A stretch of 64,000 bases of DNA from Paragordius varius (Eukaryota; Animalia; Nematomorpha). Position numbers and translations under genes: made by a program. The notes beneath the pieces were generated by a model. It was not told where the DNA came from. It saw only the letters and a program-made list of their open reading frames with translations, and did not search any database. Each line of letters begins with the position of its first letter. Positions within the stretch are counted from its first letter, which is position 1. This document shows, in pieces, positions 15,690 through 64,000 of the stretch. The DNA lies in the NCBI GenBank assembly GCA_964247055.1, contig OZ176056.1, positions 8,308,001 to 8,372,000 of the forward strand, written 5' to 3'.

Positions 15690-17510
15690 TTAAAACAATA
15701 TTTTTGTCATGTAGGGGCCTTCAAGTTCATAACCCAATTTACGGTAATAAGCCCGTGTCCCTACACCCGAAATAACGGCAATTTTGTTGGAGCCATGTTC
15801 GCTTTTTGCGATTCGTTCAGCTTCTTCCATAAGCAAAGTTCCTATGCCTTGGTGCTGAAATTTGGTCGGGTCTTTGGCCTGCAAGGGTACAACACTCCCA
15901 TAAACATGTAATTCCCGTACGATGCTAACTCGATCGAGTGGATAAGTAGGAGTAATAATGTGAGCGCTGTGAACGTTAGTATTAGCAAAAGTAGAAGCAT
16001 TATGATTGGCTTTAAGCTCTGGTCTGTATGCAGTAACTGGATTACATTGCCGTAACCTTAGTAATCCTATCAAAGTGTCAGTTGAGGTATCCTCATACGA
16101 TAAAAATGTTTCCCATCCCTCATTACCCACGTAGTCTCGGCGAACGAGTTCAATTTCATTTTGTTGAGCGGCATTATTTGTTGTAGTAGGGGATGATGTC
16201 ATATCCTGAATTATTAGGGCACCACTTTTATTTTCTGCATTATATTTATTGCAATTTTTTTCCTTTTCCTTATTGGCATGAATATGTCGGATTCCAGCTT
16301 CACGAGTTCTCACATCTCTGCATGTTAAACCGAGCTCTTTCATACGAGCCAAACAATGTTCCCGTAAATTCCCAGATTCGACAGCCGAGGAGGAAACGAG
16401 GGGCATGGGTATGTCTCTTTGTACACGATAAACTCGTACCCAAGGTGGTATTAGCGCTAAAATTTTGGATACCAAATCAATGAGTACACTGGGTGGGTAA
16501 CTTTTATACCGTCCCGTTTTCCATAATTCATATAATCCGGTACCGCGAATAACGAGCGTAGGATAAATTTTAAGGCCATCGGGCCTAAAGCTGGGATCCT
16601 CAAACAGTTGAATGAATTGCGACAAGTCACGTCGATACCCCATGTTAGGAAGGTCGGGCATCATATGCGTCACAACTTTGTAACCGGCTTCCTTGGCCAA
16701 CACAAACGTTTGACATGTGGCAGAAACTGTGTGCCCACGATTCGTGTCTAAGGCAATGTCTTCGTAAACACTTTGAACTCCAATCTCCAAACGGGTGCAT
16801 CCATAACTCAGCATATCATTTATGTGCCGTTCATAACAGTAATCGGGACGTGTTTCAATCGTTATACCGATACATTTCATGCGTGAGCGTTCAGACATGA
16901 GGACGGCTTCGCGGACCGAATTACTCCGAGCCCCGGAAAGTGCATCATGCAAGTTACGGATAAAAAAATCGCGATAATCTTCGGGAAGTGACATGAATGT
17001 CCCACCCATAATTATATATTCAATCTTTTCCACATCGTGTCCCAGTTGTTGTAATTGAGAAATCCGATGACGCGCTTGAATATAGGGATCATAACGTGCT
17101 CGTATAGCACGCATTGAAGTAGGTTCATACCCCGTGTAAGATTGTGTCGAATATTCGAAATCTGAATCGGGTCCGCCCGGGCAGTAAACACAAACGTTTC
17201 CAGTAGTTGCTATGTGAGGACATCTATGCGGTTTACACATGACTGCGACAACAGCAATTCCACTTGCTGTACGGACCGGTTTAGCCTTCAAAACAGGAAT
17301 GAGAATGCTTTTGGATTCATTTGGAATGGCATTTATTATATCAAACAGTTTGGGTTGATTTGAGAGTTTATATTTGTTTGATGAAGCAGATTTAATTTTC
17401 GTAAGGTTAAATGTTTTACCCGATTGAACATGGGATAAAACAGTTTTAATAATGTCACCAACGCACAAGGAATAGTTTTTATGATTAAGCGTGTCGGTAT
17501 CGATAGTCAT
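15690..17510 (-). CDS. ELP3: Elongator complex protein 3 (radical SAM + KAT domains), 606 aa, single exon
   Basis: Long ORF with [22 protein letters not shown] (Fe-S cysteines), [31 protein letters not shown] and [15 protein letters not shown]. Confidence 0.99.
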
Positions 17511-33893: not shown

Positions 33894-34003
33894 ATGGACA
33901 TTTTTCGTTGTCAGGTTTACCACATGTTTTTGGTTTAGTGGAAATTTTATAGGCTGCGAAAAAAATTGAATTGCAAAGTTTTGCGTTTCTACCGGTATAT
34001 TAT
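33894..34003. promoter_or_regulatory. Putative bidirectional promoter / 5' leader region, GOLGA7-Salvador
   Basis: Only 110 bp separate the two divergent ATGs. Confidence 0.6.
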
Positions 34004-34942
34004 ATGACTTCTTGGAAAAAGACTAAGCAAAAAACTGAAAATTTGATCGGAGTATACAGTAAAAAAACAACCAACACATCACTTAAACGCGATGACAATA
34101 ATACGGCATTCAGAGATTATAAAATTAAAAGTCGCGAAAATATTAATCAATTACACAATAACAACCACCATACAAAGTCGCAGCAAATAACTCCAACTAA
34201 TTTAACATCCACTTATTCAACAAAGGTTAAACCATCCTTTAAATCATACATTTATGATTTTTTAAAACGAAAAAAATCTATCGAACTTACCATTTCTGAT
34301 CCAAATCCTAATAATTCAAATCACTTGGCTATACTGCCCCATAAAAAACATTCTGTTACAGCACAAAACATTAAACCCAAAAATTTTGTCACCATAAACA
34401 ATAATTCTCCTGTGAATACTTCCCCTCTGGTTCCAGCAAATCCATTCTTGAATGCTAAAATCCCTGATTGGCTTATTACATATTCCACGTCCCTACCAAC
34501 AACACTTGAACCCAATTCTGAATTAAATTGGAACCGTTTTGAGATGGGTCAGTTGGAAACGTTTGAAGCTATACTTAAACGATTATTTATGCTGGAGCTA
34601 GAAAAAATTGTTATGAAATATGAAGCATTTCGCTTATGCCTAGCCCATAAACTTGAAGAATACATTTACAAACATAGGGCGGTAACATCAAATAAATGTT
34701 TTGTCACCCAATCATCACCTTACCACAAAACATCACAACAAATTGTGCCCAAAACTCAAGAACGATACAATGTTTCAAATATCTCTAATCTCATCTCAAT
34801 AGATTCTGGCATAAAAAATTCGGGGGCATTTAAATATTCTTTCCCGAATTTGAGGCAACAACATCAATATTATGTGTTAAATAAAAGTGATAAAAACTCA
34901 AACATATATTACTCACAAAATATGTATATATCCAATTTATAA
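34004..34942 (+). CDS. SAV1: Salvador (SAV1/WW45) homologue with SARAH domain but no WW domains, 312 aa, single exon
   Basis: From ATG 34004: MTSWKKTKQK..IGVYSKKT resembles the SAV1 N-terminus (MLSRKKTK..GKYVKKET). ANPFLNAKIPDWL and LNWNRFEMGQLETFEAILKRLFMLELEKIVMKYEAFRLCL match the SAV1 pre-SARAH segment and SARAH helix. Confidence 0.85.
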   Translation: MTSWKKTKQKTENLIGVYSKKTTNTSLKRDDNNTAFRDYKIKSRENINQLHNNNHHTKSQQITPTNLTSTYSTKVKPSFKSYIYDFLKRKKSIELTISDPNPNNSNHLAILPHKKHSVTAQNIKPKNFVTINNNSPVNTSPLVPANPFLNAKIPDWLITYSTSLPTTLEPNSELNWNRFEMGQLETFEAILKRLFMLELEKIVMKYEAFRLCLAHKLEEYIYKHRAVTSNKCFVTQSSPYHKTSQQIVPKTQERYNVSNISNLISIDSGIKNSGAFKYSFPNLRQQHQYYVLNKSDKNSNIYYSQNMYISNL

Positions 34943-52841: not shown

Positions 52842-55800
52842 ATGTTTGTGTTGGCTATAACCTATATTTATTGTGTAGTAGCGATCGGATTATCAAGTTT
52901 TAATAATTTTAGCTAAAATTTTATTTCATATTGTATAGCAGAAAACGACGGGTCAGGGGAAATAAACGGTATTTCACTTTGATATTTTTTTATAAAATAT
53001 TTTTTGTAAAAGATTAATATATAGGTTTATAGTAATTTTAAACATTACCCAGATAGCCAATTTCTTCATTGCTTCGCAGTGTACACATAAAATATCCTAA
53101 TATTATCTTTTATTCTAACCAAGATGCCTTTTGTATGATTCTTATGAACAGTTTTTTAAGTTATTATTCATGGTTTGCCCATGTTAAAAAATTACAAATT
53201 TGTGCCCATTTTTTAATATACTAACTTTTTTCACTAAAATCTCTATTAACAAATTTATAAAATAACACACGCCTTAAATTTTTTCGCTCCTCTAAAATTG
53301 GATAATATATTTTAAATTACGGCCAAAATAGTGTGTGGTGCGATAAAATTTTAATTCCATGCTGAAATTTGACATCAACCAAAATAGTTTAAAAAAAATG
53401 CCATATACTTTTTTAAAGTATAATTTTTAATTTTTGTAGACGCGTACTTACATTTTGCGCGGCTTTAAAAAATATGGTTTTAAAGGCCATATAAAAATAC
53501 TTTTTCTATATACAGTCATGTTTTATTTAATCAATAATTTATTTTCGTTCGTTAAATGGGTATAAATATTTGTTAAAGAATGGAAAAAACAAGAGCTTTA
53601 TGGTATTACAGTCATGTATCCATTATTTTATAAAAAATTTATTATTTTTTCGTTAAATGGGTATAAATATTTGGTAAAGAATGAGAAAAACAAGAGCTCT
53701 ATGGTATTAACAATATCATATTATCAAAAAGTATAAAAATTACCATAGAGCTCTTGTTTTTTTTTCAATCTTCAAATATTTATACCCATTTAACAAAAAA
53801 AAATAAATTTTTTAAATAAAGGATACATAACTGTGATGCAATTATACTTGACTTTTTTTATTGCTTCAGAATATTTTTTTGCTAAAAATTGTGTAAACGT
53901 TTGTAATTATGGCACAAATATGATTACGGATTTTTAAAAAATTTTGACATGATAAAAATTTTAGTATCATCAAATAATCCCAAATAATATACTGTTTTAC
54001 AACAACTTTATGTTAAAAATTGAATTTTAAAAAAAGTTTTTTTTTCAAAACTATTTTTAGTTGATATCAAAATTTAGTATGTAAATTAAATTTTTTATCA
54101 CGTAATCTTTTGCGTTTATTTTAAAAGAAAACATTTAAGGCGAAAAAATTTAGGATGTTGGCGCCCACATCTAATAAAATTTTTTTTTTAAAATATTGTT
54201 TGGCTTTTTTATCAGTTTATTATATGTATTTATAGTGATATTTTTGTTAAATACCAAAAACATTTATTTGTGTTGTGCCATATCGGCCAGTTTCCAAGTT
54301 ATAAAAGACATAATATTTTAGTAGGATTCGTTTATTTAAAGTTAGGAGCCAAAATCCATATAAAAACTCAAATGAGTTATTCAATTGATTTTATTTTATC
54401 TATAATTTTTAAAAAACGAAATCTATATTAATATACATTATTACTTGTTTGGAATAGAATAGAAGAGCATTGAGAATCACAAACAACTTTTTATACCCTA
54501 AGCTATTTACACCATTCCTAATTGAGTTTGACTTTATGTTATATCTGCTATCAAATAAAATGTTTCCTTGAGCAACAGTTTTAGCGAACCATCGAAATCA
54601 TATACAGTAAAAATTGAAATTATACGGACAAAACTTAAAAATATAAAAACTAATATTTTTTCTAAAAGACAACCATATTTTTTAAGTTTTGATTAAATTA
54701 AATTTAACTTATTGTTTTTGATTTCCAAAGTATAAAATAGAAATGTATATTGGTTATATAATCAATTATATATTTTAGGCTTGTTATTAAGTATATTACT
54801 AGGATTAATTTAGGCTTGAAAATATATTTGTCTTTTAGATTTGTTGTATAATTCTTGATAGAGCGACATTATATATCTATATATAAGCATTGACGCAATT
54901 CATATGAAAAACTAATTATGATAGATTTAATCATGGTTCAAGGTGTTTCCCGTATAAAAAAAGTGTTATTTAATTAACTCTTGAATATGATCTTATCTTT
55001 TGTCCAACCAGGCTTAACAGAACTGATGAATTTTGATTTTGAATGCGGCGCTTTAAACATGTAAAAATATTCGTGTACCATGATTAATACCCATTTAAAA
55101 TCTCATGCCTCTAAAATATAAACGCTAAAATTAATACTTGAAAATATGAAACGTATTATAGATAAATTTGTTAACTCGAGTTTATTGCTTTTCTTAAGCC
55201 TAAAATTTAACCAAACGCATTTTATAATTCGCCCTTGAATATAACTCCATCTATAAAAATGCGCCTCTTGATATACAATATAGTTTCAACAATAAGATAG
55301 GGAAATTTTGGTTTTATATAGTTATGTTTAATGCTTATCTTTATAATTATACAAACATAATGATTCTGTTTACATAAACTTATAAACTCCTACGATTAAG
55401 TTTTCATCAATACATAATATCGGATGCTCTTTTATTTATTACATTATTTCTTATATTATATTGTTTATGTTGGGTAGTTTTAACAACAAGGAAACAATGT
55501 TACGATTTTATGTTGGAAGAATGTTCCAGAATTCCACGTAAGATAGAAAATATAACGCATCAAGCTGAAACTCGCAGTCAGTTGGAAATAGTTTTAGGTA
55601 AAAATGAAAAGATATGTTTTATTATAAATATATATATATATTCTAAAATAAAAAAGTTAAATTGGTAAAATATTTTGCAATATAAAGAAAACCGGAACAA
55701 TGAAACAGTTAGAATGGTGGAGCAAATGTATGGAGCTGTTGATGCATACTTTGTCAACCAAATGACAAAGCTATATAAATCTTGTCAAATGTATTACAAT

Positions 55801-58800
55801 ACGCTCCCAAATAAAACGCAAGAACAGCTGTATTCAGAATTGAGATCTGCCATGCAACAGAAATTTCAAACGGGCTTATATACCAAAATAGTTAACAATA
55901 ATAGTACATATACTAGAGAAACAGTCTTGAGCTCCTTGAAAAATTTGTTGGTTAAATCTGATGTCCCTTTTCCCATGTTGTATAAGTTTGATTACGATGA
56001 AAGGTATTATGGTTGGTTTAATTTAACTGTTTTTATATATAAATGTATATGGGGAAAAATTATGAGGCAAATTTAAGAAATTATGTATATATAGTGAAAA
56101 ACTCTTCCTTTTTTCGTAACAGAATATGATTGCAAACCTCAAAATCACCCTTGAATCCTCCTGATCCTAAATTACAAATTATCCCTTAAAGATTTTATAT
56201 ACAACCATAGGAGTAAAATATTTTTGGAATTAAAAACTACTAGATATTTTTATATTTAAAACAAAACAAAAACTTTTCGTAAATTACATGAATATATAGA
56301 AGAAAAAATATGCTATAAAAAATATATACCATATCAAAAATAAGTTAGATATAATTTTTTTAGGGTTAATTAAAAATGATTAAAAGTAAATCGAGATACT
56401 TTGAGTGAATTTGAGGTGTTCAAGAATTTGAAATGGTATTTGGTTTCTAATATTTGCCCTACTCTTATTTAACGGGAGAAAATACTAATATTAGATCATT
56501 ATATTAAAAACAATACAATGTAATAACTTTTGATCGGAGTCTTTGAAATACGATTCTATTTTCCGATTATTGTAAATTTTGATATATTTGGGTGTTGACT
56601 GTAGCTAAGATCAGAATTTTTAGACGCTTTTTTTAGATTTTTCGGATTATAATCAGTATATAAAAATCGTCAAACTCACCATTGCAAGATTTTAAAGGGT
56701 CGCTAAAAATATTTATCTTACCCAAAAGCCCGCGCACGCATTTTTATATACCCAAAAATTTTAATACCTAATTGGCCATAAAAAAGCAGTTTTTGGAACC
56801 AAATGCGGGGTGTGGGTCGTTGTTAGAGTACCACCCTTGTAAAATCTATTTGGATACTACTGATTCTATATTAAAATTGATTTTATATAATAATATCCAT
56901 ATGATACATAGACGTCAAAAGCTTAACGTAACAGACATTTTATTGAGAATTGTGAGAGTTGATGAAAATTATCTGGGAAATGAAAAAATTATGTTTCTAA
57001 AAATGTACACTGATATTCTGGGGGGTAATCCAGCCCACAAAAGTGTCATGGGTCAAATGTTTGATGAATATTATAAACCTCAATACGTCTGCACCTATGG
57101 TTTTTTATCAAGAACGGTAAATTGCATTTCTTAACCACCTTAAAATAAATAGGTTTTTTCGAACAAAATATTAGCTACAACTGATTATTTTTGATGGTAA
57201 TTACCTAACAAAATATTGTAAATATAATATATTAAAGTTGTTTATATTTTGGTTAACCTAAAGTATTAAAACTCTAAAACGAAAAGGTTATATTATTAAA
57301 AGGGGCATGATGCAAGGATAATAATAGACAAATTTTGGCTTAGATATAGGGTTTCTATAGAAAAACTGAGTTTTGGTCTAATTAAAAATTATAATACACC
57401 ATTTACAATTCGGAATTAACTCTTAAACAAATAAAGTGCAGCCTAACGATTCAAATTCACCCCTAAAAAATATGTGTTTTTGAGCAAATATTACTCATTA
57501 TTAATGTCAAATAAATCGCTATGGCTCAGTTTATTGTATATTCACTTATATTTTAATTGCGAACAAAGTTTCCTTTTCATAAAATATATATAAAAATATA
57601 ATTAATTTTTAATCTTACAAAACCGTTAATTTATTGGGTGAATTTGAAGGGTTGAAGGTGAATTGGAATTGTTCGGGTGAATTCTAATAGTAAATGGTAT
57701 ATTAGTAGAATCAATCTTCTGTATTATAAAATCTAATTTATTATTAGAGTCCATATAACGAAACAACTATCGAACGGATACAGGAAATATTTCAAGTAAT
57801 AATATATACCTCTAAATATCAAAAATGTGTCTAGCAAATAATTTATAATTTATTTTGGATCAGAGCAATCTAAATTTTAAAATTATTATTAGAATTTAGC
57901 TAACAAAATTTTTATTTTTTTATTTTGTAAATAAAAGTTAAGAGATCAAACAAAAAATAATTTAAGGATAAAGTATTTCAAAGCCTTTGTTATTATGAAA
58001 CTATCATTTATTAGCTTACGACTAGAGCAAGAAAAAATTAAAATTATATTAACAACCTTGATTTTCCCTCATACTGTAAAATTACAATTTAAATTATATA
58101 ATTGAGTGTATTACCAATTATCATCTCAATTATTTTCCGTTTCGCAAATAGAAAAAAAACCTATTTAAAAAATAATGGCTGTTTTCAGAAAGAATTTTGT
58201 CCTGTAAAAATTATTTGTCTGTGCAATTTTTAAAAACACACATTCAATTTTTGTTATTCCGATCATACAAGATACGATCTATTAAAACGGAGTGCAAAAT
58301 TGCTTAATCTTATAATTATGCAGCATGTAATGTTAAGAATATTTTTTTCCATTTAACTAATATACTATTATATGTGAACATAGAGTAATATAGTTATATT
58401 TTCAAGCGTAGGTTTCCCTAAATTTTTTTCTTTTGAAAAAGGCGAACCAAGGTTGTCAACCCCTGTCTAAAGCATAATTTTCTTTTTTTTCTATAAAATT
58501 TTAATTAATTCCTAGGGTATTGATATTAGACAAATTATATGGGACAGAGGCGCTTATCTGGGACTTAACATGGAAAAAGATTCAATCAATTTTCAAGCAA
58601 TGAACATGACTTATACTGAGTTTTTGGGTCGATTTTTCCAGAAATATCTGGCAAACTCTACTATGATTGGGTAATTTTTTTACATAAATATTTTTCTGTT
58701 ACCTATATGTCAGCTTTCTTTGATTTAAACACGTTTTAAAACGAAATAGGCTAAAACAGGCGTTTGCACACAAATGGCTTCGCGGGCATAGATATTTAGG

Positions 58801-61800: not shown

Positions 61801-63383
61801 AAAAAGGCATTCTATAGTTTAAACCTTCGGCTTTCAGATAGGCTAAATTTTCTTTGTTAGTTTTCGTTCTTTCGAGTACTTATTAGACTTTTTCTCTTGA
61901 GTTGGTTCTTATAAAAAATCCTTTATTTATACCTAGTGGTTATACCTTATTTTTTTTAAAATTATTGGTTGATTTGTATTTTGAATTTCAGATGGATGTT
62001 GTGTAGCCACTTTTAGTATAATTTACTGTTGTGGGGTTGGACCATTTGTATATACCTAATTTATATTCAATTTAATTGTAGAATTTATCTAATTTTATTC
62101 TGTAAATTGGTTAATTTGACATGTCAATTTGCCACGATTTTGCTTGCAAGTCTCTCTTATCGGACTTTACGATTACTTATTGTTATCTTTGCCATATCTG
62201 GCATAATTATAGGATCGCTTGGGGGATATGCAGAGCTTGTGCAGCCGCCCATATGTATCACACTATACATAAGCCCCTTTTAAATTTTTAACATTTTGGC
62301 TCTTAGCTTGTTTAGTATCTTATTTAATGCCTCGAATTTGTTATCCATGCATGGAATATCACTTGTATCGACTTGCTTGTTTGAATATTTAAACATATGT
62401 ACACGAGGAATGATTGTTATTTTTGAATTAAATGCAAATTTATAAAATAAATTTTGGAAAAATCCTATTGGTGGCCTCAATTTTCTTTTTTGTTTTGGCC
62501 TTTCCATGCCATTAGGTATCAGAAAATGCAAAAATAATGGGGTGGTGCAAAACCTTGTTGACCAGTGTAATGCAAATGCAAAAATGTAGATAATTGAGGG
62601 ATACAATAATTAACAATTAATATATTTCTTGATAATAATAAAGCTTCTTTTTGTAATTGCCATTCAAATTATCTTATTATATCAAATCTCATACAATTAT
62701 TAATTAAATAAATTTTATTTTATTATATATTAATAAGATATTCACATAAAGAAAGATAAAAATTATTTAACAACAAAAATTTTGAGCAAATTAACAACAA
62801 GCCTGAATCTTAGATCGTATATATTTAAATAATTTTTCATAAAAATTAAATAATTAGTGGCGCAGTATAAATATACTTATTAAAAGTAAAAACAGTAAGA
62901 ATTGTATACCAAAAAATAAAATTATAAAGACATGTATTTTTTCTAAAATACAACCATACTTTTTTATCTTTATTTTTTTTTAATGTAACACATTGTTTTA
63001 AACTCCAATTATAAAATAGATATATATATTAGTAATACAATCAATTACATATTTTACTATTGTTATTAAGTTTTTAATAGGTTAAATTAGGAATCGAAAA
63101 AGTATGGTTGTCTTTTGGAAAATTTTATATTTTTACGTTTTGTCTGTGCAAATTCTATTTTTACTGTATCATTAGTTAAATTATCCTGGTTCAAGTATTG
63201 ATCCAACCAGGGCCCACATTGGTATCCCCGATTTCGAAGATTATCTTAAGGTATATAATCAATTTTAAAATTTTATATAAATTTATTTTTTTAATATATA
63301 TATATATATTGAAAATAATTCATGTTTTGTAATTTTAGACGACATGCAGTGAAGGGAAAAACATACGTGCACGGAATTTGTAA
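52842..63383 (+). CDS. Secreted neprilysin(M13)-like pseudo-peptidase, copy 2, intact, 542 aa, 16 exons
   Basis: Exons: 52842-52896, 52939-52968, 55478-55597, 55688-56003, 56912-57116, 57748-57795, 58516-58670, 59420-59633, 60235-60309, 60377-60415, 60483-60565, 61005-61052, 61087-61127, 61216-61295, 63176-63250, 63339-63383 (1629 nt, no internal stop). Signal-peptide-like exon 1. M13-like motifs CYDFMLEEC (CxDFxxxxC), KLYKSC, PRFY..NY, QDFFRVLF, DP. No HExxH. The gene structure is well supported; the M13 call is by motif memory. Confidence 0.8.
53511..53834. mobile_element. MITE family D copy
   Basis: Same termini and internal AGAGCTCTATGGTA/TACCATAGAGCTCT inverted repeat as 6510-7058. Confidence 0.75.
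57395..57703. mobile_element. MITE family A copy (a more decayed one lies at about 56125-56440)
   Basis: CCATTTACA...GTAAATGGTATA ends and the family core sequence. Confidence 0.75.
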
Positions 63384-63620
63384 TTATATATACTGATGAT
63401 TAATATGTTTTTGTCTTGGTTATTATTCATTAGGAATAAAGGATAAAATCCATAAAAAATTATTACATTCATAGGTGTGTTTAAGGCAAAACTACGATAG
63501 GAAAATAATGAAAAAAACAAAGACTAAATCATTTTTTAATAAATTATTTTATAAATATTGAGATAGATATTAAATACAAATACTATTTAATTATAATAAC
63601 AGTTGTTAAAATCCGTAATA

Positions 63621-63934
63621 TATAATTTCATTTAATTCTATTTAATTTTAGGCTCACCCCTAGATAATTTTCAGTTTATTTTCAAATTTTCAGTTTAATT
63701 TTCATAAATTACATTAAATTTAATTTAAATTCGTATAACCAACTGCATTTATACCAAAATTACAAAGTTGGATATATATACGAAATCGATATGTGAAAAC
63801 CCCAAGTAGTCAAATAGTTGTGTCGTACTGATGAGTGCTAACAAGCACGAAACTAGTCTGCGATTACTATTGACGAAGGGTTTCACATATAGTTTATAAT
63901 TTCTATTTATAATTTCATTTAATTCTATTTAATT
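63621..63934 (+). mobile_element. Retrozyme / Penelope-pLTR-like 287-bp unit bounded by 27-bp direct repeats
   Basis: TATAATTTCATTTAATTCTATTTAATT occurs at 63621-63647 and 63908-63934 and encloses the hammerhead. Confidence 0.65.
63789..63890 (+). ncRNA. Type I hammerhead ribozyme with minimal stem III and long extended stem I
   Basis: CTGATGA (63828-34); stem II GTGCT-aaca-AGCAC (63835-48); GAAA (63849-52); C-ta-G-T-C with predicted cleavage after C63858. Stem I TCGTA/TGCGA is extended by GTCAAATAGT/ACTATTGAC and ATATGTGAAAACCCC/GGGTTTCACATAT. Confidence 0.92.
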
Positions 63935-64000
63935 ATCCTTTATCGTTATACGGATTTTAACAACTGTTATTACAAAACATAACCAATCCGTTAATTACCA

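Follow-up and report, generated by a model that had tools for sequence, protein, structure and literature searches.

A type I hammerhead ribozyme in a solo copy of an abundant, probably retrozyme-like repeat family of an AT-rich animal genome

Animals have been known since 1987 to carry repeats with hammerheads, whose life cycle as retrozymes has already been described. Type I hammerheads of animals typically combine a helix I of 6 bp and a helix II of 4 bp with a helix III of only 1-2 bp that carries a palindromic loop; single ribozymes of this kind are poor cleavers and dimers are good ones (PMC4209133, PMC7229834). Animal hammerheads occupy non-coding, low-GC repeats of 150-450 bp, and transcripts of tandem repeats are cut into monomers, which are circularised most efficiently by the tRNA ligase RtcB; the target duplications of animal retrozymes exceed the 4 bp of plant retrozymes (PMC7229834). 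In Penelope-like elements, the pseudo-LTRs carry hammerheads, and truncated copies prevail (PMC4209133, PMC8557442). Their insertions show target duplications of variable length and heavy 5' truncation, and they include partial tandems as well as inverted copies (PMC8557442). [quoted passage not shown]

Here we describe a hammerhead locus within a window of 64 kb (the whole stretch of DNA that was analysed; 24.8% G+C). In our view, the locus probably represents a single, near-full-length copy (63648-63904) of an abundant family of non-coding hammerhead retroelements, of the animal non-LTR retrozyme or Penelope-derived kind. The family would be a further case of these already described elements. 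With the non-LTR retrozymes (satellite 2 of newt and axolotl, repeats of coral and mussel; PMC7229834) it shares the canonical type I hammerhead whose helix III is short and palindromic, the strongly self-paired, low-GC, non-coding unit of a few hundred nucleotides, the very high copy number with signs of genomic tandem arrays (periods of ~206-232 nt in this family) and a probable target duplication that exceeds the 4 bp of plant retrozymes. The locus differs from them in that it is solo, contains one ribozyme and is known from the DNA sequence alone. Its helix I is, moreover, unusually long and forms a hairpin of ~100 nt, and the sequence of the unit has no retrievable match.

A hammerhead core follows the rule C3-U4-G5-A6-N7-G8-A9 and G12-A13-A14, with an A15.1-U16.1 pair and a cleavage triplet that ends in H17. 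The core of the ribozyme at 63817-63868 (+) was read directly and was also recovered by the Rfam family HH9, a custom covariance model and a descriptor. All invariant hammerhead positions are occupied (Rfam clan CL00010), and three helices surround the core with helix I open-ended, as in type I. The 5' strand of helix I (63822-63827) is followed by the core segment CUGAUGA (63828-63834), by a helix II of 5 bp (GUGCU at 63835-63839, AGCAC at 63844-63848, loop AACA), which can alternatively pair as 4 bp with the 6-nt loop UAACAA, and by the core segment GAAA (63849-63852). The segment CUAG (63853-63856) lies within the palindrome ACUAGU (63852-63857), which forms the minimal helix III, with A63852-U63857 and C63853-G63856 closing a loop of 2 nt. 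The cleavage triplet GUC (63856-63858) leads into the 3' strand of helix I (63859-63864; 6 bp in total, two of them G.U), and the predicted cut lies between C63858 and U63859. Helix I then continues into an internal loop with UAC on its 3' side. An earlier, sequence-only reading of this DNA had described a complete core with GUC at 63856-63858, a 5-bp stem II and a stem III shrunk to C-UA-G within ACUAGU, and direct reading confirmed these features throughout. Judged by its sequence, the ribozyme is intact and of the canonical animal type I design, and cleavage is predicted.

Folding of 63785-63895 revealed two further helices that prolong helix I out to 63789/63890, in agreement with the ~100-nt stem I proposed earlier. 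The hammerhead is located at the tip of this ~100-nt hairpin (63789-63890, +), on which the depth of the family peaks. The fold energy of 63785-63895 is -35.5 kcal/mol (z = -4.86), and none of 200 shuffles was as stable. In the minimum-energy fold, part of the core pairs with the ACUAGU segment and gives an inactive alternative conformation, and cofolding of a dimer of the 52-nt ribozyme led to an extended duplex and not to a double hammerhead. According to the rule derived for animal hammerheads (PMC4209133, PMC7229834), helix III would be stable only as a dimer, the 6-bp ACUAGU helix being possible only between two ribozyme copies; such a helix III is an established variant (PMC4209133).

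The whole 64-kb window gave no match to Rfam at the gathering score. On a stretch of 601 nt, the best Rfam family was Hammerhead_HH9 (RF02275) with 26.7 bits (E = 2e-4; gathering score 52), in an alignment that spans the core and also takes in GUU and UACU, on the 5' and the 3' side of helix I, respectively. Both HH9 and the SINE-like Sm-alpha repeats of Schistosoma have the same layout of helix I with loop 1 (GUU...UAC) and of helix II with loop 2, and dispersed as well as tandem short non-coding copies are a likeness to this group, too. HH9, however, comprises conserved intronic single copies in amniotes, whereas the ribozyme described here belongs to a mass repeat, and unlike in Sm-alpha, frequent T-runs would argue against a Pol III transcript.

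A descriptor consisting of the core, a helix II of at least 4 bp and a helix I of at least 5 bp detected a single site in the window, whereas 300 shuffles that preserve dinucleotides contained none. The exact 31-mer of the ribozyme had no match in metagenome contigs, and patterns with its spacing of 12 N found none in viral contigs and prokaryotic genomes. A metagenome pattern with 13 N, one N longer than in this ribozyme, recovered 23 loci that carry other hammerheads of the ACUAGU type; these do not belong to this family and were used as comparators and as a training source for the covariance model. The model was built from 16 hammerheads of environmental contigs that share the GAAACUAGUC segment with the ACUAGU helix III; in this training set, 94.6% of the cells were paired compared to 63% in shuffles, and eight of ten pairs were changed on both sides. 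Applied to both strands of the 64 kb, it yielded exactly one match, at 63821-63865 (+), with 44.5 bits (rough E ~1e-10). By descriptor and model search of the window, the locus contains one ribozyme.

The repeat family was traced in contigs of public sequencing runs. In run X1, the depth, which was summed over contigs at 80% likeness and is not a copy number, rose over successive 54-nt bins of 63642-63911 from 65k to 186k, 356k, 502k and 624k, compared to 104-194 on the unique flank 63264-63479 between gene and element and 120-234 on a piece of the gene body. As gene-body and flank depth are similar, X1 behaves as genomic DNA. Run X7 showed a depth of ~2 on the flank and of up to 2,369 on the ribozyme. 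The summed depth indicates that the family probably comprises roughly thousands of copies. Contig joints in X1 and X7 that go back from 63861, 63885 and 63890, through linkers of 8-31 letters, to 63684-63687 imply head-to-tail arrays elsewhere with periods of ~206-232 nt and without the 30-nt repeat sequence that borders the unit in the window. Joints between opposite strands represent inverted arrangements elsewhere. The earlier claim that the locus is one unit of a ribozyme-bearing repeat family was thereby substantiated, with a depth of 10^5-6x10^5 in X1 against ~190 on the flank and with joints of both the tandem and the inverted kind.

Across the unit, the depth climbs from 5' to 3', and the ribozyme hairpin is the most repeated part. 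Such a gradient is compatible with 5' truncation in target-primed reverse transcription and just as well with several families that have only the ribozyme hairpin in common. The variants listed for the hairpin are all structure-preserving: 63860 G>A converts a U.G pair of helix I to U-A, and internal loops accommodate both a deletion of 3 nt at 63805 and an inserted A at 63875. None of the variants listed lies in the core, which is weak evidence. Sampled words of the sequence were found in none of the RNA runs listed.

The ribozyme-bearing unit (63648-63904, +) comprises 257 nt with 29% G+C. Its ends were derived from contig pieces of X5 and X6: in X5 (record 12) the match begins at 63649 and is preceded by 146 unrelated nt, while in X6 one record (23) covers 63665-63904 and another piece diverges 7 nt past 63904. 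The depth in X5 is 20-138 on the unit compared to 0-2 on the bins of the surrounding arms and repeats (63588-63641 and 63912-64000). Depth split and copy ends together show the unit to be an entity separate from its surroundings. Its 5' part contains an internal tandem duplication of 19 nt (63666-63703, +), a self-repeat whose copy number differs among family members; an X5 contig joint leads from 63701 back to 63666. No ORF of at least 45 aa is present in the unit except for one of 45 aa on the minus strand, for which a search for relatives found none. As a short, low-GC, non-coding sequence with a canonical type I hammerhead, the unit lies within the 150-450 bp of retrozymes. BLAST of the element against the 64-kb window revealed no second copy.

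A direct repeat of 30 nt (63618-63647 and 63905-63934, both +) borders the unit. Its copies are equal at 29 of 30 positions, 27 of them forming a perfect stretch, and have a period of 287; the perfect 27-bp repeat seen in the sequence-only reading was confirmed and widened. Since the repeat abuts the unit exactly on both sides, its two copies are most likely the left and right target-site duplications from the insertion of a single 257-nt unit. Alternatively, they could represent a 'tail' of the Penelope type or a partial tandem of very short length. With regard to the latter, the sequence-only reading had regarded the 287 bp as the unit of the family, so that the locus would be a partial tandem of 1.1 copies in which the 30-nt repeat, as start/3' end of the second copy, forms a miniature pseudo-LTR. 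The near-perfect repeat that directly adjoins the unit could be explained in this way, and partial tandems are usual in Penelope-like insertions (PMC8557442). However, other copies match only from 63649 on, with unrelated sequence upstream, and one of them diverges shortly beyond 63904; the tandem joints use linkers unlike the 30-nt repeat, and X5 contains the unit at a depth of only 0-1 for the bins of repeat and flank. As family members span 63649 to ~63904 and their tandem periods are shorter, a family unit of 287 nt is unlikely, and we retain the insertion of a 257-nt unit with target duplication.

The comparators provide a context for the next alternative. In each of the environmental contigs L003 and L004, two identical hammerheads of the ACUAGU type flank an RVT_1-positive ORF on the same strand (95-126 and 3199-3230 in L003, 3.1 kb apart; 80-111 and 3077-3108 in L004, ~3.1 kb apart), which is a Penelope-like layout. 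The environmental contigs L006, L011, L013, L017 and L018 contain hammerhead pairs at distances of ~490-630 nt, which is a retrozyme-like layout. Both known contexts of the ACUAGU ribozyme are therefore directly visible in public data, and the copy in the window belongs to the short non-coding context. The ACUAGU-type helix III is shared with Penelope-like elements (PMC4209133, PMC8557442) as well as with L003 and L004, and the probable target duplication, long and of variable length, the signs of 5' truncation and the tandem and inverted joints are further likenesses to these elements. The locus differs from them in that an RT/GIY-YIG ORF is missing at or near it, and in that many metazoan Penelope-like elements have a 'min-HHR' with a long helix II and a short helix I, which is not the case here. 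An autonomous Penelope ORF (telomerase-like RT with GIY-YIG endonuclease) was not found among the four ORFs of at least 130 aa in the window; three of these were scanned against Pfam, with ELP3 domains or no match as the result, and the only match of the fourth is a Salvador-like protein.

The unit could be imagined as a solo pseudo-LTR, namely the 3' tail that a 5'-truncated autonomous Penelope-like element has left, in which case a separate non-autonomous family would not exist. The increase in depth towards the 3' end, the hammerheads and prevailing truncation of Penelope pseudo-LTRs (PMC4209133, PMC8557442) and the reverse-transcriptase ORFs flanked by ribozymes in L003 and L004 are in line with this explanation. 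It is opposed by the 5' end at 63648/63649, which is common to a copy in another run and represents a defined end and not a random truncation, by the short tandem periods of ~206-232 nt, by the missing reverse-transcriptase ORF nearby and by the ribozyme itself, which is of the canonical retrozyme type and not the 'minimal' variant of Penelope, in which helix II is long (PMC4209133, PMC7229834). We consider a truncated Penelope tail as improbable as the 287-nt unit, and a non-autonomous family of its own as the better explanation.

Unit and direct repeats are in turn surrounded by an inverted repeat of 27 nt (63591-63617 and 63949-63975), which was absent from the sequence-only reading. The perfect part of the left arm (63599-63617) is preceded by TA (63597-63598), and that of the right arm (63949-63967) is followed by TA (63968-63969); the perfect 19-nt arm starts with ACAGTTG. 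If the unit and one copy of the direct repeat are subtracted, a perfect hairpin of 82 nt is left, consisting of TA, 19-nt arm, 44-nt loop, 19-nt arm and TA. Tc1/mariner-type MITEs have the same bilateral TA and a perfect 19-nt terminal inverted repeat starting with (A)CAGT. The arms differ from such elements in that their hairpin has only 82 nt without the insertion, in that a single copy is present in the window and in that the right boundary is uncertain. Based on these features, the outer arms look like a tiny TA-flanked MITE of the Tc1/mariner type, which would be part of the insertion target and not of the ribozyme unit. We also considered the arms as an inverted, 5'-truncated copy of the Penelope type and rejected this, as they lie beyond the direct repeat and do not accompany the unit where it occurs elsewhere. 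The 25 nt next to the right arm (63976-64000) are highly repeated, with a summed depth of 409k in X1, in contrast to the near-unique sequence on the left side of the arms. A further repeat therefore begins at 63976-64000 and runs past the end of the window.

The arms also allow for a reading in which the whole TA-flanked inverted-repeat block (63599-63967) is a cut-and-paste MITE that spreads as DNA with the ribozyme unit as cargo. This would account for the TA and the perfect 19-nt inverted repeat on both sides, and both X1 and X7 show a high repeat depth on the arms. Yet X5 contains the unit without the arms (depth 0 for the left arm), and in X6 the left arm has a depth of 2.8 compared to 23-75 for the unit. 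The direct repeat is, furthermore, positioned exactly between arms and unit, which is what an insertion into a prior 82-nt hairpin would produce, and a second copy of the arms is missing in the window. Mobilisation as DNA cargo is for these reasons very unlikely, and we adhere to a retroelement that landed in a MITE-like target.

Copies of the unit in X5 and X6, which are labelled as other organisms, differ by only 1-2 letters over 211-240 nt. In runs labelled as several organisms the unit is ~98-99% identical, while the unique neighbouring DNA has already diverged by ~5% in one of these runs and is missing from others. Within this unique flank, 63401-63551 is identical in a low-depth contig of X7 (organism D), and in X1 (organism A) 8 letters and 7 gap letters differ over 298 nt, so that the source of the window may be nearer to D than to A. 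It may be speculated from these sequence identities that a currently active ribozyme-circle retroelement passes from species to species, such as from a parasite to its hosts or back. If true, this would be an interspecies ribozyme element in a lineage whose nearest sequenced relative, a horsehair worm as judged from one weak protein match, reportedly lacks Penelope and SINE elements. We regard such a transfer as highly unlikely; the shared copies are more readily explained by traces of contamination or by close kinship among the coded organisms.

Upstream of the element, the window contains the last exon of an M13-like gene (63338-63383, +), which ends in the stop codon TAA (63381-63383) with TTCSEGKNIRARNL as the C-terminal end of the translation. 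The element starts 265 nt past this stop codon and the cleavage site follows 475 nt past it, on the same strand. From its location downstream of the stop on that strand, the sequence-only reading had derived the idea that the ribozyme could cut the 3' end of the M13-like transcript. A co-option for 3'-end processing is nevertheless barely conceivable. Two AATAAA signals (63435 and 63538) come before the element, the first only 52 nt past the stop codon and 210 nt ahead of the element. Poor cleavage is to be expected of a solo ribozyme whose helix III is minimal (PMC4209133, PMC7229834), and this copy has roughly thousands of near-identical counterparts. Most likely, the solo copy is a passive insertion without a role for the neighbouring gene.

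Several other features of this gene region were observed. An exon-sized ORF of the M13-like gene at 55675-56076 (+) had no Pfam match and leans weakly towards M2 (ACE-like) peptidases in a protein atlas (score 0.85), while the C-terminal exons of the gene look M13-like. For one exon, the atlas pointed weakly to M2 peptidases and rotifers. The last long intron contains a MITE-like sequence (62939-63122) with arms of 26 nt that are 92% complementary and 132 nt apart. Many X1 contigs skip variable inner parts of it, and its summed depth of 10^5-4x10^5 in this run implies a very high-copy family. The highest summed depth of the entire stretch, up to 756k in X1, was reached by a block at 62400-62615, which is also present in X5-X7, overlaps a 108-aa ORF on the minus strand (62280-62606) and contains no hammerhead core.

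Finally, a chance resemblance, i.e. an isolated dead motif as the scores under the Rfam gathering thresholds might suggest and as the sequence-only reading would have concluded from missing cleavage in a genome without related copies, is refuted for practical purposes by the empty shuffles, the 44.5-bit model match and the huge repeat family in the run contigs that is centred on the motif.

For the family as a whole, the following scenario may be proposed. A copy of the unit would have been inserted by target-primed reverse transcription into the loop of a small, TA-flanked, MITE-like inverted-repeat element, and this insertion would have created the 30-nt duplication (63618-63647 and 63905-63934). 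In transcripts of the arrays, adjacent ribozymes would pair via ACUAGU to form an active double hammerhead, in which each ribozyme cuts after its GUC. The long helix I could then hold the 5'-OH and 2',3'-cyclic-phosphate ends of the ~206-232-nt monomer together, the tRNA ligase RtcB would join these ends into a circle, and a Penelope-type reverse transcriptase would copy the RNA back into DNA. RNA of the solo locus could be cut once at most, and this only with a partner ribozyme in trans. As a circular RNA needs two cleavage sites and one ribozyme is present here, the locus cannot release a circle, and the candidate circular RNA element of the sequence-only reading is not supported for this copy by itself.

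Elsewhere in the window, two ORFs have recognisable relatives. An intron-less ORF of 606 aa (15690-17510, -) encodes the Elongator subunit ELP3 with radical SAM and GNAT domains. It is 59-68% identical to proteins of animals from many phyla and therefore says little about the taxon, and a closer relative is absent from the protein database. The Salvador-like ORF (33971-34942, +) has a single relative in the database, a protein of the horsehair worm Gordionus with 38% identity (E = 1.5e-21), which gives the sole hint at the taxon. The Gordionus genome has 26.9% G+C and is rich in DNA transposons, and its automated annotation reported no SINE and no Penelope (10.1101/2023.06.26.546503).

The locus itself is a clean solo insertion with a probable long target duplication and by itself of little weight. 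It fits the proposal that animal retrozymes are mobilised by target-primed reverse transcription of the Penelope type, beyond the rolling-circle copying of circles alone. For the annotation of this region, we suggest masking 63591-63975 as nested repeats and assigning to them no function for the M13-like gene. In a broader context, an AT-rich animal genome holds a very large family of ribozyme repeats, of a kind that automated repeat annotation tends to overlook. If the window belongs near Gordionus in the animal tree, the ribozyme family would represent a repeat class that such pipelines miss.
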